NCBI RefSeq assembly: GCF_902459465.1
Contig: NC_047065.1
Location: 1,612,001-1,676,000 of the forward strand
Direction: 5' to 3'
DNA from: Asterias rubens
Taxonomy: Eukaryota
DNA length: 64,000 nucleotides
Position 1 is the first letter of the stretch, and each line of letters starts with the position of its first letter. The position numbers and the translations under genes were made by a program. Shown here piece after piece: positions 9,106 through 63,360 of this stretch. The notes under the pieces are model-generated. The model saw only the letters and a program-made list of their open reading frames with translations, did no database searches and was not told the origin of the DNA.

Positions 9106-9234
9106 ATTAGTTTATCATATTATTTATTGTTATGTATGTTGTTGTTAAAACTTATTTTGACATTATCACTGATATAATGTCAAAATAAGTTTTAACAACA
9201 ACATACATAACAATAAATAATATGATAAACTAAT
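9106..9234. repeat. Perfect 61-bp inverted repeat with 7-nt loop
   Basis: 9106-9166 is the exact reverse complement of 9174-9234; loop CACTGAT. Confidence 0.95.
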
Positions 9235-10271
9235 CATTCATTCATTCAATTTTGAAATGATTTGGATAGACAACGGAGTTATAGATTTAAGATTATATTT
9301 ATAAACTTACAATTAACTAAAAACCTACTTCTCCAAAGTCCTCGTGAAAAGAGTTTCTGATAAAACAAATATGGTGATGACTTCAGTGTGTTTATCTGTG
9401 CCGCTACCTTTCATTTAGTTACTATTTTTGGGATTTTGGAATTCCCAGATTGCATCATTGAACAAAATAATGTTCAACATGTAACATGTAGTTCGATGTA
9501 ACAATTATGCTTATTTTTGTCAATAAAAACCAGATAAAACAACACTTATTTTTCTTAAATATTCTTTGGGATACTATTATCTTTCAATATCTAAAAAACT
9601 AATTAAATTTGTATAATGTGATTGTCAATAAATATAAGCATGAACTACATCAAGCCAACACTGTGATAACAACGCCGTTGTTGCTTTTATTTTTAGCAGA
9701 TGACGACACCGATCATACGGGGAATACCCAAAACCTTAAAGGGCGCCCTCAATGCTGTCAAATCAATGCAACAAAGCAGTGTCGTCTGCATTACAAGGGT
9801 CAAAACATTTTGTTTAACAGTCAATGATATATTTTTTCATTACGTGTTGTAGTATTATTGTGAAGCCAAATTGAACTCAATAAAGAACGAATTGAATACC
9901 AAGTGAATATGTCTCATGAGCGTTTTATTCTCCGGTTCTCGACCATCCTGCTATCCCATAATATGTCTCCCAACTTCTAGAGGTCACTCTAATTTGCATA
10001 GGTCTCATTTGCATAGCACAGTAAACAATGCATGTAATGCATACATGTACATGTAATATCAGGACACTACACGTGTTATATAATGAAGATGATATCGCTG
10101 ATAATGAAGGTTTTTTATTGTCAACTGAATGATCAACGGTAATTATTGTGATGAATAATCCATACCATTCTGATTCTCAAACTAATCCTGAGATGGTTTA
10201 AGGAGTGATTTCAGGCCCAGTGACCAGGGGTAATAATGTGAAGTGCTTTGGGACGCCCTTCGGGTGTAAAA

Positions 10272-14696: not shown

Positions 14697-15941
14697 TGAA
14701 GGCTAAAAACCAACTGGTGTACAAAAAAGAAAAGTTTTAGTCCATAAATCACTGAGTTCTACTTACCAATTCAAATTGTCCTGCAATTTTATCTTACATT
14801 CTATGCACAATCTTTGTCTCCAATGACAATGAAATTATAGACTTGTGGACAAGTTGTTTTTAAAATGTTTGTCGTGATGGTAGCGTTCCGACTTTTTACT
14901 CGATTTACTTGTGACAGTGGCAATGTTCTCAGAAGATAGTTACAATAATCGGAGCTTTAAAATTATTGTGCCACTTCACAAGACTGCTTTCCCCCGCGAG
15001 ACTAATGCATCGCAACTATTGAGAGCAGTCATAAGCCAGCAGACTCGTATGAGGGCAGTGATTTTGCGAGAGCAGTCTTTGATCGCTGAAAGCTAGCTAC
15101 TGAGTGTAATTTTACAGTAAAACAACAACACAATCTTAAAGATTGATATTATAAATAGAATAAAATAAAAATAAAAAGTAATACAAATGATTTTTCATTC
15201 ACTGATAACTATGGAAAATGTTGATCGAGCAAGATGAATGTGATGATGAATTATTGAAGTATTTTACAAAAAGAATCATGACATAAACTTACCCACACCC
15301 AGCAACTGCCCAGTGGAAAACGGAAGAGACGTAAATTTGTGAATCAGTGTAGCGCTAGAGCAGGTGAAAACAGTAATTTATAGAGAAAAAAACACTGAGT
15401 GAATCGACGATATAATGATAGAGCTAGAGAATTCTGCATGGCATGTGCTAGCGCAGCAGTTAGAATGAATGTGGTCTGAGTGTAGGATTTGTAAATAAGG
15501 AAATGACTCACTGTGTTAAAAACAAGTGTTTCGTAATGTTGGCATTTGGAACCAAAAATCCTGCATACTTCACCCACTACACTACCTCCATGCTCCGCTT
15601 AGCTGTTTGCAACATTCATAACGTAATCTCGCAGGCGGGGGAAACACAACGATGACACATCACACCAGAGCGGATGTTATTTTGGGAGTCAGAGAAAAGC
15701 TTGAGCGTCAAAAGCGGGTAACGTGTAGTTCATGCATTTGTTGTTTTGTGGTTTTATTTAATTTTTGAACAAAAAATGTATCTTCTTGTCTTACAGTTAT
15801 AAATTCAGGGTAGCAACATAGTTGTTGATGTTCAGAATATTGCTGAAAGTGTGCAATTTATTGCAACTTTGTTGTTGTTATTGTCTGTCACCAACTACAT
15901 AGTACTTAAAATTCTGTTTTTAGTATTAGGCAACGTCTTCC

Positions 15942-15951
15942 GGGATTCCCC
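15942..15951. promoter_or_regulatory. Consensus NF-kB site upstream of IRF-like gene B
   Basis: GGGATTCCCC (minus strand GGGGAATCCC) fits GGGRNWYYCC and lies about 650 bp upstream of the putative 5' UTR exon donor at 15288-15292. Confidence 0.4.
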
Positions 15952-16294
15952 CTTTCTGAGTGTTTTGAAGAGGGCGCCCTCTAATGTGTTGACTTCTAGA
16001 AAAACATCAAGGGTACAGAGAGAGGTATCGAATTCGAGGAATTTGTTCTTCTTCATGAATTCCATTCTATCAGTATATTTCAGTGGGATCAGCGCTGGAA
16101 CTGACAAACTGCAGTAAAAACTTAATCTTGAGGAAGTGTGTTTTTGAATTGAAGCCAAACTTTGAAGTTAGAATACTCAATTGAATTAACTATAAAAGAA
16201 AAGGTGTAAAGCAATTGTTTGAGCCTAGTTGTTACCCTGAACCTAACTTCAATAAAAAAGTTTTGTACATGCGAAGGTTTTACCTCTGATTGGC

Positions 16295-42188: not shown

Positions 42189-44528
42189 TTAACATTGCTT
42201 GTAGACAACACCAGAATGTCTGCCGGCAACATTCTGACGATAATGACGCTTGCCTGAGCGACTCTGCTGGTGGTATGCCTTGTTATGACGCTCGACCTTT
42301 GACCTACTTAGTGATCCCTTCTTTGTACGTTCCATAACCTCTGCCTCTTGGATGGCAGCCAAGTTCGGCGGGTTTTCCAAACCAACGCGAGCTGCCACTG
42401 CAGCTGCGCGGCGGGGTGGCTGCGTGTTGCGCACACGCAGATTACGTGACTTGGATTTCTTCACGATCTGATCAGTGTTTTGTTCGTGCTGACGCATTCT
42501 TCTTGATCTCATCGCCATGCCACTGCGTGGTCCATAAACAGACATACTAGGGTGTTCAATAAGGAGGTTCTCCATGGGACTGGTGGCAAGTTGATGCGGG
42601 GAGCTACCCCCGGCGGTGAAGCATGGAGGAGGGGTAACAAGCCAACTCTCCTCCATGTGATGTTGGCGGTTAGGAATCCCAAGAGGTTGGGTACCAGACT
42701 GGGCATCATTCAATGGTGACTCCCTGCTCCACTTGGGGCTATCTAATCATACAAAAATATCAAGAGCAAAATACTACTAAAGTGTTGACAAAATTTTATC
42801 AATGTTTATTTGGGGATCTGGGCCCAATTTCATGGCTGTGCTAACCGTCAAATTCGGCGCTTACGATCACCATTCTCTGCTTGCACATCAAGCGCTGAAT
42901 TTCTGCTCCAGATGTGTAAGCGTAGGAAGCTTAGTAACATACATGGGGTATGCACGCGCAAATGGGCAAATCCCCCACTAACACGTGATATATGCTTGAC
43001 GTGAGCACAATATTCCCTGCTTCCGCAAGCCCCGATAATTTGCTTATAATAAGCAGAGCCATGAAACTGGGCACAGGTTGGCTCTGTGGTTTCTACACCA
43101 TGCCTTTCACCTCTGTGGACCCCAGTTTTAATCCTGCCTCTTATCTTAGCCTTGATTGTGTTTCAGTCCCTACCTGATTGTGTGGGTTTCCCCTATTTAG
43201 CTTTCCTCCCACATCTGAAACTGAACATTTCTTTATTATCATTTGCATAACTCATCCTGCACATAATATTGTATTGTTCTTCAATAAGACCATTCTTTGA
43301 TTTCACCTTAAACCATCTTCATACTGCCTTTTGATCAAAATACAAATGTAGATCTTCCACTGTACAAATATCATATAAAAAGTCACACCATTTGTCCTTG
43401 CTTAATTAGGGTCATCATAATCAGCTGATCATAAATAATTCATTGAGCCTGTTAATTTAGTCAATCCGATTATGTCTCCTTTTTAATATGTAACATTAGC
43501 GGTTACAAACGAAGGTGAAATAGCACTGTGCAATAACCGACCCGCTGCATTATCCACCACCATTACTCATGCATCAAATGATTCAATTGGTAATAATCAC
43601 ATGCACGGGTAGTGAGACTAGGACTAAGTGGAGACCCATGCGGTGAACGTATAGGTGGTTAAATTAAAAACGGACTACAGTCAGCGCTCTATGGGCATCA
43701 TGGGTAGTCAATGACCTTCTTAGCATTTCTAATCAATATGGAGGGAGAGTAGATTCAATATCCATTCATAAAGAGTTTTTAGCTTAAGTTGCAGGCTGTT
43801 ATTTGGGGGGAAAATTAAAATGTTGAAATGCTACATATATATTGACTTGAATATTTGTCATTACCCGTTGTAAGAGACAATCTTTTCCATATTTATTCAT
43901 AATGAGTTTTTATGTAACCCTTCAAGTTAGCTCTAGTTGCAGGCTGTGCACTGATAGAAAAGATTGTCTTAGACAATGGGTACTGAAAAATATTAAAGGT
44001 AATTTGTAGCATTTAGACATTTTCAGTTTGCTTTCAAATTTCTAATGTCTAACTCTTTGCATATTGATTATTAATATAACTTGAATGAATTAATTTGAAC
44101 AGTGGGTGATGTATACTGTGGATAATCTAACACAAAATAAAATAAACTATCGTTTAGCGTCCTGACTTTTGATAAAAGGAGGCAGGCTCCAAAAATACTA
44201 AGCGGGCAGGGACGCTAAACATGTTTTGGGTTTTTTTTTCGCCTAAGGGTTTGGCAGGCAGGGGAAAGGCCTGGAATTTGATAGGGGCACCAAGGCCATG
44301 GCAAAAGGGTGCCTGATCCTGGCATAACTCAAGGTCTGTAACATTAAAGAGCAAACAGTTAGATAACCTACTGGTGACATCCACAAGTACCCAGTCGTCA
44401 TCAGCATAGGTGAGCTGCATACTAGAGCTCGGTCTAGAGCCCTGCCCGCCATCCTCCGATGCTGATGGGTCTTCAGCACTGGCAGCACTGCCGAAGATGT
44501 ACTCTGCCAGTCCGCTGAGCATACTCAT
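42189..44528 (-). CDS. TP53INP: TP53INP1/2 (DOR family) autophagy and nuclear cofactor, 2 coding exons, 236 aa
   Basis: Exons (minus): 44372-44528 and 42189-42742, joined in phase 1. N-terminal LAEYIFG, LIR-type motif DDDWVLV, DOR-domain signature MEESWLVTPPPCFTAGG...TSPMENLLIEHPSMSVY, and a basic C-terminus ending VVYKQC. A probable 5' UTR exon has its donor at 49299-49303. Confidence 0.92.
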
Positions 44529-47500: not shown

Positions 47501-50500
47501 TAGCAATAAGCAAGTGTTAGAAAATGCTGTAACTTGATTCATAGACAGTATTAAGCCTTCCCAGAAGTGCCATCTTCTCTAAATTTACCCCCCACTGTAC
47601 CTTATCTTGATGCATAGAGAGTAAACCAATTGCAAGTAGGATCATTAACCAGTGTTAGACCTTACACTAATTTTTGAAACTATAATTGAAGATTGTTCAT
47701 TTCAGACATGGGTACACAATCCCTAGACCCAATTTTAAGAGCTACCTACAATCCATTTTATATAAACAAAAATTGACCTATATTTCAGCTACTCATAGTG
47801 AAAATATCTGACAGCTTTTCAGATGTTATCAGTTTTATTTAAGCATAAGCCATGCAGGCAGGAAGGAGTCTTACACAGTTGAAGGGTGTTTGAGCGTTAA
47901 TTTTTTTAAATATCATTGCAGTGCAACGTATGTAAATTAACAAAAGGTCGCGTGATGTCAAATGACAAGCTATGGCTCACAGGAACAGATACTTAACCTC
48001 AATGTCGGGGCGTGTGTACCTCAATGTCGGGGTGTGTACACACGATCATAATGAAATCAGGGGAATAATTAGCAAAACATTAAATGCTGCAGTAAATTTA
48101 TGAAGCAATGCACAAACACACCCATACAGACTCATTATTGAAAATCAGAACAGTTTAAAACCTAAATAACCCAGAACAAATTTGATTTTTCAAATTGTTT
48201 GATTCATTTTATATAAAAAAAGGAGATGCAATTAAGAACAATACTTTTACAGCTGAAAGAAAAATACTTTAAGAAATGGATGACATCGTCAATGTTTAAT
48301 TTTTGTACAAGAATTTTTTATAAATTGTTTTGTTTGAGACAGTTATTGTTAAGTTTCTGATACAAACTGTATAGTACATTCACCGTTGTCATGCAAATGA
48401 CATGCACATCACAATCACATGCACACATCGTGTAATGTAGTTTCCCGACTCAAAGGTATGTTTGATTGAATGTAGGGTCAACAACTCAATATTTGTTTGT
48501 TTGTCAACAAATTGCTGATTTATTTGGGTTGCTGATTTGTATGTAGGTAAAATTATCAAGAAAGTAAGTGGGTGAAAGTACAAGGTACGGATGCTTGGTA
48601 AAATATCATACATTGTACTATAATTTATGGGTCACGACTGATTATTTAGTGACATACAATTTTAATAAATTTGCATTTGTAACATTTTGTTCATTCAAAC
48701 TTTTAAGATTCGTATCGATGTGAAAATATTTTTGAGTAATTATATTTATTTCAACAAATCAAAAAGCCATGTATGTAGACAATTTTACAATTGTCTACAC
48801 AGTTAGTTATAGTAATTTTACAATGTCAATATACTATTCCACTAATAATAAAGTGATAATTCCAGCCAAATCTTTTGCAATTACATCTCAAAAATATTAA
48901 GTATCAATACCTACAAAAAATCAAGTGATCTTGATTGTTTATTTTATTATTTTGTTTCATATTTTTTTATCTAATTATAATAATAATATTCATAATATTA
49001 TATATATTAATAATAATATCAGAATTTATTATCTTGAGAAAAATCCAAGAATATAAGTCCCTTTTAATGCATGTTAATTCAAGAGATAGGGTCGACAAGA
49101 ATTGTATAATTTTAAAGCAATTGACAACTATGCACTGCGACGGCCGGCACACACAAACACAGCAAGAGCAGTTGCCTGGCAAACTGCCGGTTCGGTCCCC
49201 GCCCATCTTCGGAGCTCTCGGCAAAATGAAAATGTCAACCGAGTCCGGAAAAAAGGATCATTACAAAATACGCCACAATCAAAACATCCTGTTAATTTCT
49301 TACCTTTAATCTATGACTCAGTCTTTCTCCGATGGTTTAATATTATTAATTGAGTAATGCAGTAAGTAGAGACACTTCGGTGAGTATAAAAATTCGTTAA
49401 AAATGGCGCAATGTTGTGCAAGGATTCCTTGTTCGGTTTATTTCGATTGGTTTGTTGACAACAAGCGACCAGCTGATTTGTGTGTGACGTTTTCAAGGCT
49501 GTTTCCATATTTGGCTCATTTGTAAACAAATTGGGCGATACCAAGATTTGTTTAGGTAAGCTTAATTGTGTTGACAGTTTGATGCAAGAAACTCCATATC
49601 CATTATTTACTATCGACAAAATAGCGCCATCTCAGTGATTTACACTGTGCCCAGTTGTAGTATTTTAAATATAAATCAACAGTTTTTGCGTGTTTCTGTT
49701 TTGTATTCGGCAATATGAAAATAAACATTAAAATGCAACACCCCTAAATAAAAGTAGAGAATGGTACAGCCATAACAACTAGCACGTGATGTAGTGCGTG
49801 ATCACGCATTCAATGGGCGCAAGGCTGTTGACAGTCTACTACCTGTCATTTGGGGGCAAAGTTCCATTGTGAGCTTCAATTCCCACCTCAAATTTGTCTT
49901 TACAAAAGCAAACTTTCAGGTTTTTATTCGTCGTGGAAGGTTTTCAAACTATTTAATGTTACAGGACGAAATATTTGCAGAGAATGATGCATGCATTTTG
50001 TAAAAATAGCCGCAACCGATTTCAGTGACTAGGCAAACGAGCGTATTTTTAGACTAATGAATATTCACGTTTTCATTACTGACATCCTGATTGGTTACAG
50101 GAATGAATATGTAATATGCCTCGTTGGCATTATTTTTTTTTGAGTGCGTGTGAGCCGCGTGACCTCAATAATCTCTCTGATGGAATCGTTGTCACAAACA
50201 ACCGGGGGCGCCCTCTCGAAAACTGTGACCCGGAAGCAAAAGGCAAAGACATTTCGCCATGCCTAGATTTCCACGTCAACGATTTTGTGTCATGCCCGCT
50301 AGGAGTGCAAAACGTCCGTAGAAAAGTTATTTCGAGGGGGTTTTCGTGACTGAAGTAACCGCCGTTATTGTTTTTGAAGTTTGGGGACAAAATCAGGTAA
50401 ATTTTGTATGATGTCACTTTATTTTTGTCATGTTTACGACTACGTTGTAAAATTTATAATAAATATTTATTTTTGAGGATTGTATTTGTAATTGTATCAA

Positions 50501-51129
50501 TCATGTTTCACTGTTCTGTTTGTACAATTTTAACATCTGAATTGCTATGCAAATGCTGCAGGGTACGGCTAATACGAGATGACGAAATGCATTTATTTGC
50601 TGTTAATACTTTGTGAATACTTTAGTAAATGATGAATCATTCATACAGCAAAGACAGAGCTTTTTGTAATTTAAACGACTAAATAATTTAATACATGATA
50701 GTTTTGTTTACAATGTTAACTTATTTTTAAAGTTGTTTATAATATTATAATTGTCAACTTTCTTTCTCTATCAATGATCATGGGACCTAGATCCAGAAAC
50801 TGGGGCGCTGTACTCCATCTTTCGAAATTTTGACTTTATCGGAGTACGCCCGATAGTGTCAAAATTTCAAAAAAAGGAGTACAGCCCCCCAGTTACTGGA
50901 CTTGGTCTAGCTTTATTATGTATACGTCAAGAAAAATATAAAGTAGATTTCTGCACTGCACCGAGGAAAAAGAAAAAGACGTTAAAATCAATCACCATCA
51001 TCAGTACTATGGTACTGAAGGATTGGAAATACAACAAATATTTAATTTTCATAAAAAATGGTGGACCACAAAACTTTCACACACACCACACCAAATTGTG
51101 TCAAGCGACATTCAAATGTTTTGACTGGG

Positions 51130-51325
51130 GTGAATTTCACAAAGAGTTAGGACTAGTCCTAACTTAGAACTAGTCCTAAGAGATATCAAAAATGTACAGC
51201 TATACCTAAGTTAGGACTAGTAACTCAAGATAAGACTAGTCCTAACTCTTTGTGAAATCCACCAAAGATCTCCTAGGACGAGTCCTAAGTTAGGACTAGT
51301 CCTAACTCTTTATGAAATCGACCCA
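51130..51325. repeat. TTAGGACTAGTCCTAAC-rich palindromic dispersed repeat (copies at about 2990-3103, 5145-5200, 56770-56925)
   Basis: Repeated palindromic TTAGGACTAGTCCTAA units inside termini GGGTGAATTTCACAAAGAG / CTCTTTATGAAATCGACCC. Confidence 0.7.
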
Positions 51326-51619
51326 AGGACTATAAAGCTTAGTTCATACTTCATGCAAAGTGAATTTTGATGTCACAGCTCTGTTTTTCGCGGAGTTGAG
51401 CACAGTTCAACTGATTGCAAATGATTCGATGTCAATTTGTGTCATCAAAATCCGTATTGTATTAACAAAAAGTATGAACCGGGCTTTAAGGTTGTTGTAA
51501 TAACCTTTCTGTATAATTCTGTATCCATCAATTCCTTTTAAGATATTTTTCTGACATCCCCAGTGCTAAGTGGCTTCTTATCCATATTGCTACCCGACGT
51601 CTTGAGAGAAGACTACATA

Positions 51620-53975
51620 ATGCCTGTATCACCAGAGGAGCTTGTCAGACTCCTGGCACTTTTGGCCCAGGAGGAGAACCTAAAAGTGACTGTAAAGGAG
51701 ACTATGAAAGGCGGAGCCATGGCTGGTGCTGGAGCTGTGATTGGTGGATTCTGTGGGGGCCCAGTTGGAATTGCAGTTGGTGAGTAAAAACTACTTGTAA
51801 AGCCTAGTTCATACTTTCTGCAAATGCAATTTTGCAATACGATTTTTGACGACACAAATTCGCAACGAATAATTTGCATCAGTTGACTTAAAGCTTGCTC
51901 AACATTACATTGTTTGTGTCTTAAGTGTTGCTGTTGTTTTGTTTTCTCATATGATTTTGTATTTGTGTTGCTTTGCCATGCTTGCCCATGCTTGTTTTTG
52001 TTGTATTATTTTATGAGAATTTGACACTTTTGTTGTAATTTTGTTAAGCATGATTGTTGTTGCACACAATGAGGCAGTATCAGGAAGATCGCTCCTACAT
52101 GTAAATATACCTATGTTGTCTAATTATGTATCATGTAGACCTGGAACTCACTGGAACTCACTGCTTCTGGCATTGTGTGGCCTAATCAGCCCAGTCTTAA
52201 AAATCAAACTTAATGAATTGCTTATTAACATGCCCCTGCTCCAAATTGTTAAACTCTAGCTTAAGCTCGCTTAAATACCACTGTAGCTTCTTGTTCAGTT
52301 TAGTAGGGGAAATAAATAATATTGAAATCAGAACAGGAAATTGCCTCTGTGGCTGCCATCTTCAAATGACTTTTCTTTTGGCTGTCTCTATCGTTGAAAC
52401 TCCTTAGTGTTAAAGATCAGTTCTTGAATGCATTGCTGGCATGTAGTTGCCATGGCAATGGTATTGGTATATGGTTTCCATGGCAACAGCTGCAACAACC
52501 CGTTCTGCATTTTATCCTGGATGGTGCTGGAGTCATCAGGCTAAGAGAACCATTTACACTTCAAATCAACTCTTGGGAATGCACTTTTGTTTCACTGTGT
52601 CTTGCTATTGATCTTCATGTCGTGGTGTCTGTGACAATGGAGTCTGTAAACTTGTATTAACCTTTTTGAGATATGGTGGACATTATAGGAGTGCACTGTT
52701 TGGTTTACCAAAACCTAATATTTATCAAAGTATTGTGTCCACAATACTTTTGGGGGGTTGCATAAGCAATCTCTTGTACATGTTCATGCAATTATGGTCT
52801 TCAATGGTCTATTGACCAAAAACAAGGAGAAACACCCAAGGGCCAGTCAAATTCTCTTCAAGTGGTCAAGTTGGCGTTTAAAAAGTAGCTCCAGGCATGA
52901 TATTATTCCTACTCTAGTCTGAACCAAACTGTGATTAATAAGCCTGAAATGTGTCACACACGTAGGTCGCCCTTTCACTAGACGAGTTGCTCCTACTTTT
53001 TTCGAAAGACCAAGTGCCATGCCTGTAATAAACCTAATGGGCCTGGACTAATGTGGACACCTGTGGTTACTGGTCTAACTCCAACAGGCCAGTCTACTAA
53101 AAAAGGGCAACCTTTCACTTCATATATATGAATTGATGACCTTCATTTACTGTATTTCAAATGGCTTATTATTTTGTTGTCTGTGTGCACCGCATATCAC
53201 TGTAGGCTTCATTGGTTCTTTTGAGAGACAATGACTGCATGGTTAGTGTATTCCTATTTTGTTTAATTTTTTTAACTTTTTTTATTTATTTTTTTATTTT
53301 TTATTTAAGCTGTCCATTGGCCATACTGTAGCAATTTGATTTAAATTTTGTAACTTTTTGCATTGTTAGTTTGGATTGTTACCTACTGTAACTTGTTATA
53401 TCAGAATAAAATGTTTGATACATAATTGGGAAACTACCAGTGAACGGAAACCTGACTATCTTTAGACGACCTCTAACAGGCATGCAACTCTCCCGCGTTT
53501 CATGTAAAATAAGCCTAGTACATGCAAAAAATGCACCTAAGAGCATAATAAACCTTAACATTTTCTAGGGTACCATTGTGGGTATCATGTCCCGTGGTGT
53601 TTCGGCTGCCTCGCTCCGCACCTGCGTTGTGCCTTTGAAAATTTTCCTCTTTTTTTTCAACGGGCAGTTGCATGCCTGCTCTAAAGATTTTAACGTAAAG
53701 TTTGATCTTTCTCAGGTGGTACTCTGGGCAGTATAGCTGGTGCCATCATGACTAGTGGGAAATTTAAATCCGTGCCAGAAATACTTTGTGAAATGGATCC
53801 CGTGACTAGAAATCAACTCTTCGAGCACTTCCAAAATGTCATCACAGGGTTTGGAACCCATGATGTTGTGACGCTTACTCGCTTGGTGATGGGGGACCCG
53901 ATTGCTCGGATACAGGCTTTGAATGGATTGAAAAACTTCTTTTTGACCACTTTGAAGATGGATGTGACGAGTTGA
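51620..53975 (+). CDS. C19orf12: C19orf12 homolog (MPAN/Nazo family glycine-zipper membrane protein), isoform using proximal terminal exon 2a, 139 aa
   Basis: Exon 51620-51779 (MPVSPEELVRLLALLAQEENLKVTVKETMKGGAMAGAGAVIGGFCGGPVGIAV) joins in phase 1 to 53716-53975 (GGTLGSIAGAIMTSGKFKSVPEILCEM...LKMDVTS). It aligns colinearly with human C19orf12 ([39 protein letters not shown]). A probable non-coding exon ends at the donor near 50395. Confidence 0.93.
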
Positions 53976-55093
53976 GACACTAGGACTTGCCGTTTTTGCC
54001 TTAATAGTCCTCTGGCCAAACTCCGATTGGAAAACATTGGGACAAGAACAAATTCCTCTAGATGTTTCCCGACCGACTCAGGGAATGATTTCATCAAGCA
54101 ATTTTGCATAGCAGGAAATTTAGACTGAACTTATTGCTGATATTGAGTAGCAAATTCTGATTTTTGAGTAGCAACCGGTACATTTTGTGTAGCATTTTGC
54201 TATATACAAGGGAAATTGTTCATCGAGGCTCTCTAGTAGCTCTCAAAGTGTGTGTTCATAGCTTTCCGAAGTCATGTAGACCAATACCTGCATAACTTGT
54301 TCATTGCTTTGTATTAAATTTTAGAATGAATGACAATGTTGAATTGAAAAGCCAGTGAAAGAGCCTGCGGACTGGTGAATGAAGGAGCTGGTAGAGATCC
54401 AGCTGGCAAGTCAATGAAACGCTGAGAACAAACTCAGGAATCTCTACCTCTTTTGTTTGTACAGGGATTCATAGTTTGACGCAGACACTCAACTTAAAAA
54501 TGCACTCACCTTTAGAGGGTTTGGGTATTTTTCTTACAATACAAATTACAAACATTTTACATTTAACTTGCCTGGTTTAAAGATAATGATGGAAGAAGGC
54601 TTCCCCGAAAATATTTCTTGTTGAGGTGGTGTAGTTTTTGAGAAGTGAGTTAACAAAATTAACAAAAATAATTGTACTGTTTATGCCAAGTGTGTGATGA
54701 CTAACATTATTGGTGCTTTAGCAATGAGATGGATCTCTTCTTCCACCGCAGTTATCTGTAAAAAATAATCATGCTTTGTGTTGCAAACATTGTGGAATGC
54801 TACTGTCAGTACCCAGTTTACGCAAACAGAATTTGGCTGTGACAAGACTTATTATTTAAACTTAATACAGTACTATTAATTAAGAAAAATGTTATGCACA
54901 AATACTGTTATGTATTAATTAAGGAAACAGTGTATTCACTGTGGGGTAATGAGCCAGACTGGGTTGGTGGCAAGTGGTTGTTAGCGGACAGAGCCAAAGG
55001 CGAGGTCCATTTATTTATTTAAAAATAATAATACACAGTTTTTACATAGCGATTTATCTCAAAGGATTGGGAATCTCAAAGTGCTCTAAAGAT

Positions 55094-55345
55094 GAGTGAG
55101 TTCGTTCAGCTTCCCTGGGTCTACCCCGCGGTGCTCACTCGGGTAAGCCCCTGACAAGAGCTAAACGAACGATCACTCACCGCTCTTGTGGTGATGTCAT
55201 GCACCTGGGGCCAGCCCCAAGTGACCAACTCCACAAGCAGGGCACTTGGGGCTGACCTGGGTGACCCCCTGGAATGACGTCAAAGCTATTCGAACGTACC
55301 GGGTGCAGACCGTGGTCGACCCAGGGAAGCTAAACGAACGCACCC
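55094..55345. mobile_element. GC-rich MITE between the two C19orf12 terminal exons
   Basis: About 32-bp TIR GAGTGAGTTCGTTCAGCTTCCCTGGGTCTACC / GGTCGACCCAGGGAAGCTAAACGAACGCACCC. Confidence 0.7.
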
Positions 55346-56392
55346 TTAGTCTCAGGAGTACTCCAGTCGCATACAAACAAGATGAAATATTAAAGAGACA
55401 CCTGGTGAAATTTACTCTGTTTGGTAAACCTAAATTCACTGTCCTTAGCTACCTTCGGTGCTTTTTAACAGCACTGTGAAATTGGCCCAGTTCACAGAAA
55501 CAATCTATATGACCATAGCCAGAGCCAATAACACTTGATAAGGACAAAGCCTTATATATGTATTGTGATTAAATTGTATTAGGATTTCTTCTGTGCCCAA
55601 TTTCATAAAGCCTGTAAGCACAAACAAATGTTCTAAGCACAGACAAATCTTGCTTAGCAGAAATTGGGTAATAGCCAAAGCCAAAATTTCATGGAGTTCA
55701 CATTGTTGGAAGTGGTGCCCCACTCAATGTTTGCTTTGCAAAGATTTTTGCAAAAACCAATTCTTTGTGCAAAAAAACCCAAACAGCTCTATGAAATTGG
55801 GCCCAGTTGACCAAGTGGAGGATTTAGAATGATTTAGGTTGACGTTGACAGGTCGGATATTTACTGTGCTTATCACAGGGTCAGGCACTTCAATCTTTAG
55901 AGTCTAAACAACTTGGTCTGGAGTAGCATAGGAGAATAGGATGATGGAATGTGCACATCAGTGAGATGTCCTTGTCTTTTTGGCCTTGTCTATGATGTCT
56001 TTGTTATGTCCAATTGTTCCACTGTGTCATGTTTGTCAGACAAGTGTCATCTTTAAACCATCTTACCAGCTTAACAAACATGTTTTAAAAACTCACATTG
56101 CCACTTCAACTCATTGGTTTTAATACTAATGTGTTTGTTACTGTGTTATCAGGCAGAATTTGTAATTTTGGAACTTGACAAATTGCCAAAACATAATAAG
56201 TACTAATTAAAGCTCTTGAAAGTTATTTGCATTCCTTTATTTTTCACTTAATTCTAGCAAGTAGTTATTGTATATATTGATATATAAAACTGTGCAAGTC
56301 GTTTCAAATAATAAAAATAATAATTGTTTGGAAGAGAATTTCACTGTCATTTTGGATTTTTTTGTTTGTTTTCGAATCTTACCTTGTCACAG

Positions 56393-56679
56393 GAGGTACG
56401 TTAGGTGGGATGATGGCGCGATGGAAGTACAAAGGAAACAATCGACCCCTCACAGACGTCCTCCCCGAAATGACGAAAGAACAACGAGATCAACTGCATG
56501 AACAGTGTCAACCGGTACTCCGCGATTACATCGACGATGACTTCATCTCGATGAGTCGGTTGATGAATAACGACGGGGAATTCCGAGAGAGATTGGTGCA
56601 GAGTCTTAAGACATTCGTCACCGAGACGATGAAACTTCAATTATGTGTGGAACTGCTCACAAGAGGCAAAGCAGAATGA
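56393..56679 (+). CDS. C19orf12: Second, diverged C19orf12 terminal exon (2b); gives a 148-aa isoform if spliced to exon 51620-51779
   Basis: Acceptor ccttgtcacAG at 56391-56392, phase 1 as for exon 2a, open to TGA at 56679. The translation GGTLGGMMARWKYKGNNRPLTDVLPEMTKEQRDQLHEQCQPVL...LKTFVTETMKLQL aligns without gaps to exon 2a (about 25 of 86 positions identical, counted by hand). I found no dedicated first exon between 53975 and 56390. Confidence 0.8.
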
Positions 56680-58026
56680 CACTTATTTTTCATTTTTCGT
56701 CCTCCTTTTATTTTAACAAGAGGTTGTTTTTTGTTTTGAAAGTGCTTTGGAAGGATGGCTCTAGTTCCGGGGTCAATTTCACAAAGAGTCAGGACAAGTC
56801 CTATCTCTAGGACTGGTCTTAGGAGATATTAAAAATTTACGGCTAGTCCTACATAAGTTCTAGGAGGACTAACTAGGAGGTCCAAACTCGATATAAGACT
56901 GGTCTTAACTCTCTTTGAAACCCGCCCCCGCCCTTGATTTCATAAAACTGTTAAATATTATTCAAATAATGACTGTTGGGGGGGGGTGCAATGGTGAGAA
57001 TATTTTCATGTGTTAAAAGATGGAGTTGTACATCTGTCAACAAATGAAAACATTCTCTCCATTGCAGGAATGCAAAACATTCATTATTTGGTTTAGGATA
57101 ATGCCCGAGGTAAGCGCCATTTTTTCTCCCACAAATGGCACGTACACCGAGGGCATGATGCGACTTAACTTCCAGCTATGATGACATGCTATACTGTTAC
57201 AGCGCTCCATTATTTTGCACGAATGGTATGATATTGTTAAAAGGTGGCCATCGCGCCATTCGTGCAAAATAATGGAGCGATAGAACAACATAGCATGACA
57301 TCATAGGTAGAGGTTAACTTTATATAACATCCAGGTAGGTCTTTGGAGAAACAGTCGACAAAAGTGTACAAGATTGTATATTTGCATCCACTACGAGGAC
57401 CTTTTATACTACTAGATATAATGCATGTATGCGCATGGTGTTGCCTAGCTCGCAATACAAAGAAGAAAAAAAAAGGAGAGGCTGAAAATGCACTTTGAAT
57501 AGTACTTAACTAGAAGTAACAAAAATAATGCCAGTATTCTACAAAGCAAGAAGCTTTGTTAGAGAGTTTATGAGCTTTAGCAGTTTTATGAAACAGGGCC
57601 TATATTGTAATTTTTAAAAGCAACAAACACACTGCCTTTTTATGACTTTGTGTGTGCCATGTCTCCACTGATCAGCGTTGATTGACTTTGTAGTTGAATG
57701 AAAAGAGCCCAAGTAAATCAAGGCTTCGATCACAAAAAAGTTCTATTTAAATTTAACATTAACTTCAACATGTAAAGATTATAGATCATTAACAAACTAA
57801 TTAATATATCAACTCATTTGCATAATTTTGTCTTCTTATAAAACACACAAAATCGTAATTTTGGAGAACTGACTGATTTCTGGGACATTTTGGGGGAATA
57901 TGGTTTTGTAAATTCATTTGATCACAAGATATATTTTCACGCCATTTCTGTTGAACCTTTCCATGATTATTTAATTGTTGAAGACCGTGAGTGGCTTTGA
58001 GGTACAGTTTACTGCAGCATAACAAC

Positions 58027-60519: not shown

Positions 60520-63360
60520 CATGTGGCAATTTTTTGTTATTGCCATATGGCTCAAAATAAACATTTTTATGTCAGTTAACAATGCTGAGTCTCTTGACAT
60601 GAGTCAGGGGTAGGTATAAATCTTTAATATTAGATACTAAAATGTTCACATATTGTAGAAGTTTTTGCAAAATTATCGATAAAATTAGTTCAGTGCTGCA
60701 CGCCCAGTTTCCGGACAGTATTGCCCGTATATTTTTTTCCGGGTACCGGCTTCCGGTCACTTCGGTACCAAACTCAGCACCTTGCAAACTCAGCAACCAC
60801 AACAAAGCCGGCACATACAAACTCGGCACATACAAACTCGGCACCCAGTTGAAAATGTTTTACTTTTTTGAGGTCAAAAATAGGCCGGTTCGGAGTTTGT
60901 AGGCCTATGGACATGGTAAATGGTGCCTACATTCTTTTCTTGGTGTCGAGTGGGTGCTGAGTTTGCAAGGTGCCAATAAATAATGCAAGGTGCCGAGTTT
61001 GCGAGGTGCCGAAGTGTCCTGTAAGTGTATTCGTTTTTTTTTCCATACTATAAATATAGCCAAACCAACGGGATGGCCAAAAACCAAATCAAATAAATGA
61101 GCCTGCCACAACCAATATTTCCAAAGTCAAATCAAGTCACGAGTCAACTCTGCAGTTGAGTGCCTGTGATGATGATGATGTAGGGAGAATGAAAACATAA
61201 AATGGATTTTTTTTAAAAAGATAATTTAGTTAGGCCGTGTCTTAAACAGCGACTTGCCTTGGGCTACTGCTCCGGCTTGATCAGCGCATCTGATCTGTAT
61301 TGAAGAATACTGAATAGACAAATGCGAGCAATGTACCGTAGCTGTAGCGGAGGTCTTTGTTTTGAGACAAAGTTTTGAAACGATTCAGGACAAACCTAAT
61401 GAAAGCGCTTTTTTATTTAATAAAACCTAGGCCCTACAATGAAAATTAATAGGCCTATTGAATATTTTTGTCAAAAGTATGTAATTTTATTAAGGAGATA
61501 ACTTATGTAATTATTTTTTAATTTTTAGTGTATAGACAAGAAGCCTGTAGTCTGTACAGCCTCTTTTCCAGCTGTTTGTGTCGCTACCTGCAGCGTAATG
61601 ATACACTTTCTCGTGGGAGCTGTTCTAAGTACACAGAGTTTCGTTGGGGCACTAGTACGACTGCAGATATTAGAACATCTTTTAAAGGAATATACCCCAG
61701 TTACTGGGTCTAGTATTTGTATTAGGTTTCTTTAAGTTGAATTTTCAGTTAGACTTTGAACGACTATATTCATTTGATTAGGCAGTGGTGCACAATCTTT
61801 TTTGAAAAATTATTTTGAAGAAAGCGTCCCTCAACCGTTCTCTTATTTCAGAGTGGTCCAGGTGGATGTTCTAACACCTTACGCAGATGAATTCCACGGG
61901 TCACCTCACAGTCCACGTCATGCCCGAGACTGCCAACCAATCAAGTATGCCAACTCTACCATCGAGTCGCAGGCATCCCATGGATTCAGTGCCTCTCAGG
62001 TCACCCTACCCATCACATCAACTAGGCAATTCATGGACAGCTCAATATATTTCAGAACTTCCTTTGGTCATTTGACTGTTGTGAATGATCCCGCGCGAAC
62101 GCTGTCAGTGCTGGAACCCTTTCAAAAAGATGGCTGTTCCTTAGGATTAAGAGTGCCTGTAACGAGGTCTCGATTACAAAAAAACTGTCTGTTGGCAACA
62201 AACGCCGGCTTCTTTAACACGCATACTGGTGATTGCTATGGAAACGTTGTGAGTGAAGGGAGGCTCGTTAAAAATGGACATGGAGTACAGAATGCCCATT
62301 TTGGCATCAGAGCTGACGGGAGCTTAGTTTTCGGGTAAGATTTCGTTATGGTTTGCAAATCACTTTAAAGTTTTTAAAGTTTTTTTTATAATGGGAGACT
62401 TTTGGGATGCTAGGTGGCAGCAGACTTACTAATAGGTAAGGTAAATCCATTAATCTTAAAACTGTGCACATGCTACAAAAACAATGGAATTTTCCCTGTA
62501 AGTCTGCTGCCACCTAGCGTTCCAAAGCCTCCAATTCTGCTTAAAATAATAAGTGGTTTTGTTGTTAATAGCAGGTTGTGGTGTGTCTGATCAGCAAGTT
62601 GTGGGTTTGAGTCCCTGTCATGACACTTGCATCCTTGAGCAAGATACTCTACCATGTTTGCTTTGCCCTTTGGATGGGACATTAAGCCAAAGGTCCTGTC
62701 CTCTCGGATTGGTAGTGCACTTCAAATAACCCAGAACACTCTTCATGGAAGACACAACCAACCTGGATGATACAAAAATCAACAGCATAAATACTTGGTT
62801 CAAGTACTAGATTTGTGAACTTTTAACTGGTGCGACTCTCCTTGATGAGGGGTTGTGACTTTTATCCTTTTGATTTACCCCAATCACTAATGGTTTAACC
62901 CACAGGTATCTTTCAGAGTTTGATCTTCTTGATGAGGAGAATCCATTTCTTCAGCTGGTAGGGGGTGTAGGGTGGCTATTGAGGGACGGAGAAGTTTACG
63001 TGGAGGAGAGCAAGAAAGTAGAGTGTAAAAAATCAGAGGAAACAGGTAAAGACTCTGAGTAGATCTTTTAAATTTGATTCCTGGCAATGGTTTTATGGGA
63101 CAGGATTGTAGTCTTGAATGGTAGAGCAGAGACAAAGCAGATTTCTATTCTAAATTCAGGAAATAAAAAAATAGTTAAAAAATCCCCAATACACTTATCA
63201 CTCTGTTACCTTTTTTTTAAACAAAAATTATAACTTTTTTGTTCCTTTTAGGTTCAATAGAGTCTTTTTTTAATGTGGTTGCGGCCCGGATAGCTGTAGG
63301 AAGTGACAAAGAGGGTCATGTTATTATTGCTCATGTGGATGGCAAGTCTGACTCAACAGG
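60509..63360 (+). CDS. NAGPA: N-acetylglucosamine-1-phosphodiester alpha-N-acetylglucosaminidase (uncovering enzyme), 5' partial; continues into the gap or beyond the window
   Basis: Exons 60509-60609 (signal-peptide-like MAAPMWQFFVIAIWLKINIF), 61852-62334, 62906-63045, 63252-63360, with consistent phases. Motifs GHLTVVNDPARTLSVLEP, CLLATNAGFFNTHTGDCYGNVVSEG, QNAHFGIRADGSLVFGYLSE, ENPFLQLVGGVGWLLRDGEVY, ECKKSEETG, VAARIAVGSDKEG...HVDG match human NAGPA colinearly. Confidence 0.95.
60755..61020. mobile_element. TIR element with AAACTCGGCAC subterminal repeats in NAGPA intron 1
   Basis: Begins GGTCACTTCGGTACCAAACTCAGCAC and ends GTGCCGAGTTTGCGAGGTGCCGAAGTGTCC. Several AAACTC(A/G)GCAC units lie at each end in inverted orientation. 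Superfamily not assigned. Confidence 0.55.
62393..62535. mobile_element. Short MITE in NAGPA intron
   Basis: TIR GGGAGACTTTTGGGATGCTAGGTGGCAGCAGACTTAC / GTAAGTCTGCTGCCACCTAGCGTTCCAAAGCCTCC. Confidence 0.7.
62570..62740 (+). mobile_element. tRNA-derived SINE (related copy reverse-oriented at about 7000-7145)
   Basis: B-box-like GGGTTTGAGTCCC, then CATGACACTTGCATCCTTGAGCAAG and GGATGGGACATTAAGCC..GGTCCTGT. The homologous block appears reverse-complemented at about 7000-7145. Confidence 0.6.

Follow-up and report, generated by a model that had tools for sequence, protein, structure and literature searches.

A C19orf12-family gene with two alternative last exons

We analysed a 64-kb window of the genome of the starfish Asterias rubens (NC_047065.1:1612001-1676000; coordinates below are positions in this window), which carries a gene of the C19orf12/Nazo family on its plus strand. 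The combined evidence makes it highly probable that this one gene ends in either of two mutually exclusive last exons, here called 2a and 2b, which arose by a tandem duplication predating the split of the echinoderm classes; the 149-amino-acid (aa) form made with exon 2b may differ at membranes from the canonical 140-aa form. C19orf12 names the family mutated in the human neurodegeneration MPAN (mitochondrial membrane protein-associated neurodegeneration); its molecular function is unknown, and it has been tied to lipid droplets, the endoplasmic reticulum (ER), and mitochondria (PMC12384588, PMC10883546). The coding exons of the starfish gene are as follows.

51620-51779, plus strand: coding exon 1, with the ATG at 51620; 160 nt, that is, 53 codons plus 1 nt (phase 1); the only such exon recognised in the genome
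53716-53975, plus strand: terminal exon 2a, canonical type; acceptor ..tttctcAG before 53716, stop codon ending at 53975
56393-56679, plus strand: terminal exon 2b, echinoderm-specific type; pyrimidine-rich acceptor ..ccttgtcacAG before 56393, stop codon ending at 56679

Exon 1 encodes the helix at the N-terminus and the larger part of the glycine-zipper hairpin, a Gly-rich hydrophobic stretch with a central Pro (GGAMAGAGAVIGGFCGGPVGIAVGG) that runs on into either last exon, and it is followed directly by the donor GTGAGT at 51780. One donor is matched by two acceptors in the same phase, each opening an exon that closes in a stop codon; both exons are open in the phase of exon 1, and both read G-T-L-G after the split Gly codon. 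Exon 2a extends the zipper with SIAGAIMTSGKF and yields 140 aa together with exon 1. Exon 2b places GMMARWKYKG at the zipper end and yields 149 aa, with a nine-residue extension over the 2a form that ends in RGKAE. The two exons are 28.9% identical over 83 aa without gaps (E 1e-8, tblastn within the window), a similarity far beyond chance that indicates their homology, and charged residues make up 16% of the 2a segment versus 31% of the 2b segment. The exon coordinates, acceptors, shared phase, open frames, and ungapped identity of about 29% had been read from the DNA in an earlier note, together with the GTLG start, the nine extra residues, the substitution of GMMARWKYKG at the zipper end, and the greater charge of 2b, and all of these readings hold.

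A single recognisable first exon

The Pfam profile of the family (PF20721) matched exon 1 and exon 2a with 43.9 bits each, above the cut-off of 30. Searched with tblastn at E values up to 100, the exon-1 peptide found only itself in the 64-kb window, the rest being noise, and no exon-1-like open reading frame (ORF) was seen between 2a and 2b. Scanning the whole genome (417.6 Mb in 150 contigs) with PF20721 in six frames returned exons 1, 2a, and 2b and one weak match on contig C6. In a comparison of the window, minus positions 53255-53296, with the orthologous locus of Patiria miniata, nothing between 2a and 2b was conserved but a dispersed repeat, and the conserved blocks were 2a, 2b, and 49387-50286. 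The window search, the genome scan, and the Patiria comparison thus confirmed the remark of the earlier note that no second exon 1 is visible between the two last exons. As far as homology searches reach, this is the only C19orf12 gene of the starfish, with a single recognisable first exon in the genome; such searches rule out exon-1 homologs, and a non-homologous first exon lies beyond what sequence alone can address.

The match on contig C6 (L006:1357-1773) was considered as a second first exon and rejected, as it belongs to another glycine-zipper protein. The encoded protein is small, with a GxxxG-rich hairpin followed by poly-Lys, and its likeness to PF20721 is confined to the zipper (E 7e-4, under the cut-off). 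Copies of a dispersed short repeat flank the gene at 51127-51263, 55475-55830, and 56733-56979, with small ORFs reading ..FHKELG.. or ..VNFTKS... Two small matches to residues 23-40 of 2a, at 55475-55525 and 56733-56786, fall inside this repeat and were taken as chance or repeat similarity.

Orthologous gene models and a transcript

An exhaustive phmmer search with exon 2b returned a small set of 2b-type sequences; a word-index search with the same exon gave only ORF-style fragments from genomic and metagenomic contigs, and none of the protein searches, from which records of the starfish's own genome seem to have been absent, returned a complete isoform of this species. One sequence of the phmmer set clusters with a 148-aa protein of the sea cucumber Apostichopus japonicus (XP_071817890, 'protein C19orf12 homolog isoform X1'), whose N-terminus resembles exon 1 and whose C-terminus is of the 2b type. 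The Apostichopus locus has one start and two products of 139 and 148 aa, with the exons in the order of a 160-nt phase-1 first coding exon, a 2a-type exon, and a 2b-type exon. A Logan transcript contig from this species (L009, SRR33087135) consists of a 5' untranslated region (UTR) exon, exon 1, and 2b, with 2a skipped. One start and two products in the order exon 1, 2a, 2b were also found in Patiria miniata (141 and 148 aa) and in Lytechinus variegatus (139 and 148 aa), the first coding exon of the latter being split in two (L011:6001-6072 and 9148-9243). The Lytechinus 2b begins approximately 590 nt past the 2a stop, so the 3' UTR of 2a has to be very short there or to overlap 2b. The products of Amphiura filiformis have 138 and 148 aa, the distal 148-aa product being known here by its length, and both tail types are present among the X2 and X3 proteins of Acanthaster planci.

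The exons of these orthologs map in the same order and phase as in the window. The same layout is therefore present in starfish, sea urchins, brittle stars, and sea cucumbers, already in automatic gene models, and 2b-type orthologs, which the earlier note had proposed to seek in other echinoderms, were found in asteroids, echinoids, and holothurians. Since both isoforms are already among the RefSeq pipeline models of at least five other echinoderms, the layout is real but not new. Full-text literature searches found no paper mentioning C19orf12 with echinoderms in a relevant way, the isoforms existing only as RefSeq models, and the family reviews make no mention of such isoforms.

These orthologs also bear on the proposal that 2b closes a separate gene, nested or downstream, which would have a non-homologous first exon and promoter of its own between 2a and 2b or elsewhere. 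The 2.4 kb of unannotated sequence between the two exons would leave room for such a gene. However, no exon-1-like sequence occurs elsewhere in the window or genome, only repeats are conserved with Patiria in that interval, and in Lytechinus the interval shrinks to the roughly 590 nt given above. The sea-cucumber transcript and the models of Patiria, Acanthaster, Lytechinus, Amphiura, and Apostichopus all join a shared exon 1 to 2b, and the predicted fold of the 2b module is complete only with the helix and strand from exon 1 (see below). We therefore regard a separate gene as quite improbable and retain the interpretation of one gene with two last exons.

Purifying selection on exon 2b

Selection on exon 2b was assessed against a related starfish, from which one genomic contig (L003, NCBI GCA_014845345.1) spans the exon and its flanks. 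The 2b coding sequence is 90.9% identical between the two species without insertions or deletions, compared with 79.6% identity and 36 gap columns in the upstream intron, and both the AG acceptor and the stop codon are conserved. Nei-Gojobori counting gave 13 synonymous and 13 nonsynonymous differences, corresponding to a synonymous divergence (dS) of 0.26, a nonsynonymous divergence (dN) of 0.061, and a dN/dS ratio of 0.23, with fewer nonsynonymous changes than neutrality predicts (binomial test, P 0.001). Relative to Patiria, exon 1 is 96% identical, exon 2b 68%, and exon 2a 55%; the constraint on 2b is thus no weaker than that on the canonical 2a.

The earlier note had allowed that 2b might evolve neutrally as a pseudo-exon. 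In this reading it would be a decaying relic of the tandem duplication, open by chance and making no functional protein. The weak match of the exon to the family profile when taken alone (E 0.18) and its identity of only 29% to 2a would fit such a relic. The dN/dS of 0.23 and its P value speak against neutrality, as do the uninterrupted reading frame with its retained acceptor and stop, next to an intron 11 percentage points more diverged. An invariant Arg-Trp and an RGKA[D/E] end are shared by the 2b orthologs of at least three classes, and a spliced sea-cucumber transcript carries 2b. The pseudo-exon reading is effectively refuted and retains almost no probability; the substitution pattern instead indicates that exon 2b is under purifying selection at the protein level and is no dead relic.

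Splicing in the starfish

Word content of sequencing runs was used as an indirect measure of splicing in A. rubens itself, a run being counted as a holder of a region at one-twentieth or more of the sampled words. In four own-species runs from four studies (X1, X15, X17, and X18), the fraction of sampled words found was 0.87-0.98 for exon 2b together with its 3' UTR, and none of the four was among the holders of the 493 nt just upstream of the 2b acceptor. This pattern of a held exon and an absent intron is that expected of cDNA-derived contigs with 2b as a spliced exon, and it lends indirect support to the splicing proposed here.

Some points limit or weigh against the reading of a single gene with two functional last exons. 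Exon 2b alone scores 12 bits against PF20721 (E 0.18), below the Pfam cut-off, although full-length 2b-type orthologs do carry the domain. The runs are labelled only 'RNA?' or '?', and the comparison of exon and intron words is indirect. Three further own-species runs (X2, X16, and X19) hold both exon 2b and the upstream intron and are presumably DNA or pre-mRNA. Finally, the exact 32-nt junction of exon 1 with 2b had 0 matches in metagenome contigs, a result that is uninformative. On the basis of the orthologs and the word pattern, splicing of exon 1 to 2b is very likely in this starfish.

A different use of the exon is suggested by one protein, P0015 of the sea cucumber Holothuria leucospilota (217 aa), which consists of exon 1, most of 2a, and 2b; by this account 2b would serve mainly in a longer chain of exon 1, part of 2a, and 2b, and not as a direct alternative to 2a. 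Exon 2a of the window, however, lacks an in-phase GT donor resembling the consensus at the corresponding position, its in-phase GTs lying only within the first 72 nt or at the stop. The transcript of the related sea cucumber A. japonicus skips 2a entirely, and all 2b-type RefSeq models have 148 aa. Given the missing donor, the 2a-skipping transcript, and the length of these models, P0015 is most likely a gene-prediction chimera of two last exons, and a longer chain as the main product is very improbable. Direct and mutually exclusive use of 2a and 2b accordingly remains the preferred reading.

Age of the duplication

A maximum-likelihood tree built from the C-terminal segments placed all of the 2b-type exons in a single clade (support 98/94) comprising three asteroids, three echinoid-like sequences, and two holothurians, the Amphiura distal product not being included. 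As this clade extends across three echinoderm classes, the duplication is older than the split of at least these three. In the established phylogeny of echinoderms, the split of these classes dates to approximately half a billion years ago. Exon 2a of the window falls with the 2a-type exons. The same tree did not resolve the 2a exons from the outgroups (Saccoglossus, an insect, and an unidentified ENA sequence) and gives neither the order of events nor which copy is the more ancestral.

The locus of the hemichordate Saccoglossus kowalevskii (L012) has one terminal exon. Approximately 3 kb of downstream sequence, with Ns, was covered before the contig ends, which leaves an origin before the echinoderms neither shown nor excluded. 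The RefSeq model of this species (P0007) has 121 aa and lacks about 18 glycine-zipper residues; it is probably incomplete, as the locus contains 1097 Ns.

What differs between the two protein forms

Across species, charged residues account for 16-23% of the 2a-type segments and 30-44% of the 2b-type segments. Three features are invariant in 2b and never occur in 2a: the Arg of A-R-W at the zipper end (Ala in 2a and in the outgroups), a D-G-E turn, and R-G-K-A at the terminus with Asp or Glu as the last residue. RGKAD or RGKAE closes each of the eight aligned 2b-type sequences and the 2b segment of H. leucospilota, the window 2b ending in KAE.

Structures were considered through AlphaFold models of the Patiria X1 and X2 proteins, taken as proxies that are 68% and 55% identical to the window 2b and 2a segments, respectively; mean pLDDT (predicted local distance difference test) was 61, with the soluble parts at 70-80 and the zipper below 50. 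Helices and strands follow each other in the same order in both models, where the exon-1 helix (residues 5-19) and strand (21-25) pair with strands in the C-terminal module. Patiria X1 has nine extra residues (140-148), which are unstructured in its model. The X1 model matched Drosophila Nazo (Q9VHT9) and the Xenopus protein Q6DJ35 with a probability of 1.00 and template-modelling (TM) scores of 0.56-0.64, and matched human Q9NSK7 more weakly (0.80). According to these models, the fold is retained when the last exons are swapped; what changes is that the second hairpin arm becomes shorter and recharged, the surface is recoated, and an invariant peptide is added in an exposed position at the C-terminus.

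Conservation, the ortholog models, and the transcript strongly support the central proposal of the earlier note, that duplication of the terminal exon has provided one first exon with two alternative C-terminal modules. Two of its terms need revision. The membrane anchor was described as shared, and exon 1 is indeed common to both forms; the exon boundary, however, lies inside the glycine zipper and 2b shortens and recharges the second hairpin arm, so the anchor is not fully shared. A switchable C-terminal domain was also proposed. The two tails stand, but there is no free-standing domain: the AlphaFold models show the C-terminal module packed against the helix and strand from exon 1, so the swap would remodel one globular domain. 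The further suggestion of the earlier note, that one isoform may be a housekeeping form and the other an immune or tissue-specific one, is speculative, as is a link to the nearby IRF-like pair.

Flanking signals and neighbouring genes

The predicted transcript features around the coding exons are as follows.

49387-50286, plus strand: candidate promoter and 5' non-coding exon; non-coding blocks 72-96% identical to the Patiria miniata locus (blastn)
51564-51619, plus strand: probable 5' UTR part of the first coding exon, with a putative acceptor ..tttttctgacatccccAG just before 51564
54313-54318, plus strand: candidate ATTAAA, the first poly(A)-signal-like hexamer past the 2a stop, 338 nt downstream of it (pattern scan)
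56828-56833, plus strand: candidate ATTAAA, the first poly(A)-signal-like hexamer past the 2b stop (pattern scan)

In the sea-cucumber transcript, the exon that matches exon 1 likewise starts 56 nt before the ATG, and its 5' UTR exon lies approximately 2.5 kb upstream of the first coding exon. The 49387-50286 block lies 1.3-2.2 kb upstream of the ATG, with an equivalent upstream position in Patiria. The 3' UTR of 2b may extend beyond the hexamer at 56828, as words up to position 56900 occur in run X1.

Upstream of the gene, an ORF on the minus strand (44154-44528) begins MSMLSGLAEYIF.. and contains an acidic DDDWVLVD motif reminiscent of TP53INP/DOR proteins; a Pfam search of this ORF gave no match. 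In Saccoglossus, a gene with the DOR domain (PF14839) lies on the minus strand upstream of C19orf12 (L012:2544-3806), and the starfish ORF may for this reason represent conserved synteny. The next gene on the plus strand, at 61802-62338, starts more than 5 kb past the 2b stop and has a weak match to PF09992 (NAGPA phosphodiester glycosidase; E 0.004).

Proposed mechanism and function

We propose that the terminal exon was duplicated in tandem before the starfish, brittle-star, sea-urchin, and sea-cucumber classes split, and that the phase-1 donor at 51779 can since be joined to either the proximal acceptor at 53716 or the distal acceptor at 56393. Choice of 2a, with cleavage and polyadenylation downstream of this exon, would yield the canonical 140-aa protein, and choice of 2b would yield a 149-aa protein of the same fold. 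The two acceptors may compete: 2a would result if its acceptor and poly(A) site (ATTAAA at 54313) are used in time, and 2b if the distal acceptor has been transcribed and is chosen first.

The 2b form would differ in membrane behaviour or location. Its hydrophobic hairpin is predicted to end about six residues early with Arg-Trp-Lys-Tyr-Lys, the charge of its soluble module would be doubled, and its probably disordered tail would end in the invariant RGKA[D/E]. The terminal K-A-[D/E] fits the pattern of a KXD/E signal, which has Lys at -3 and an acidic residue (Asp or Glu) at -1, counted from the very end of the chain. KXD/E is the COPI-binding Golgi-retention signal of TM9SF/EMP proteins and has been proposed for other membrane proteins (PMC4642860); a hairpin prediction, still unsettled, puts the C-terminus of C19orf12 in the cytosol (PMC12384588). 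Going by the motifs, it is conceivable, though in our view rather unlikely, that 2b is an echinoderm-wide retargeting device, in which the basic-aromatic ARWKYKG stop would shorten the hairpin and RGKA[D/E] would act as a COPI signal, placing the 149-aa form in the early secretory pathway (ER-Golgi). In that case, the canonical form at mitochondria, ER, and lipid droplets would be set against a 149-aa form in another compartment, and echinoderms would offer a natural 500-million-year-old experiment on the C-terminal module and hairpin length of the MPAN protein.

As genome annotation the gene is ordinary, both isoforms being already modelled by the pipelines in sister species. Its interest lies in two versions of the C-terminal two-thirds of the protein that are carried on one first exon and appear to be kept under purifying selection in echinoderms. 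The differences between them cluster at the hairpin end, the surface charge, and the C-terminal pentapeptide, which points to the parts that tune the behaviour of the protein, and the two forms offer a simple comparative handle on an orphan disease protein.

Comparison with known systems

The C19orf12/Nazo family (PF20721), with human C19orf12 and Drosophila Nazo (CG11671) and CG3740, shares with both starfish forms an N-terminal helix, a glycine-zipper hairpin with a central Pro, and a helical C-terminal module; the hairpin and its central proline have been described for the C19orf12 family (PMC12384588). The 140-aa starfish form has the size of Nazo and nearly that of the canonical 141-aa human form (PMC12384588). 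In flies the family has diversified by whole-gene duplication (PMC12384588), whereas in the starfish the last exon is duplicated within one gene. An ENA assembly of a eukaryote contains two intronless tandem C19orf12 genes of 139 and 140 aa (L014:10001-10420 and 15768-16190), a whole-gene route to two family members as opposed to the exon route of echinoderms. The predicted human isoforms differ in N-terminal length or have a truncated end with a short unrelated tail (PMC12384588); the starfish gene, in contrast, has two full-length, homologous, and anciently diverged copies of the last exon.

The closest counterparts are the echinoderm RefSeq models named 'protein C19orf12 homolog isoform X1/X2/X3', which have the same architecture, exon order, phase, and lengths (138-141 versus 148-149 aa); they are automatic and without a published description, and sea urchins, unlike starfish, split the first coding exon. 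In broader terms, the gene falls into the known class of tandem-duplicated alternative last or mutually exclusive exons, with one donor, two homologous same-phase acceptors, and a stop and poly(A)-like signal for each exon. Compared with that class, the starfish pair is unusually old and diverged (29% identity, before the class split), and its swap point lies inside a membrane hairpin. The likeness to the KXD/E signal of TM9SF/EMP proteins (PMC4642860) is at the level of the motif: all 2b-type proteins end in K-A-D or K-A-E on a tail predicted to be disordered, and the motif as described does not include the invariant Arg-Gly that precedes the Lys.

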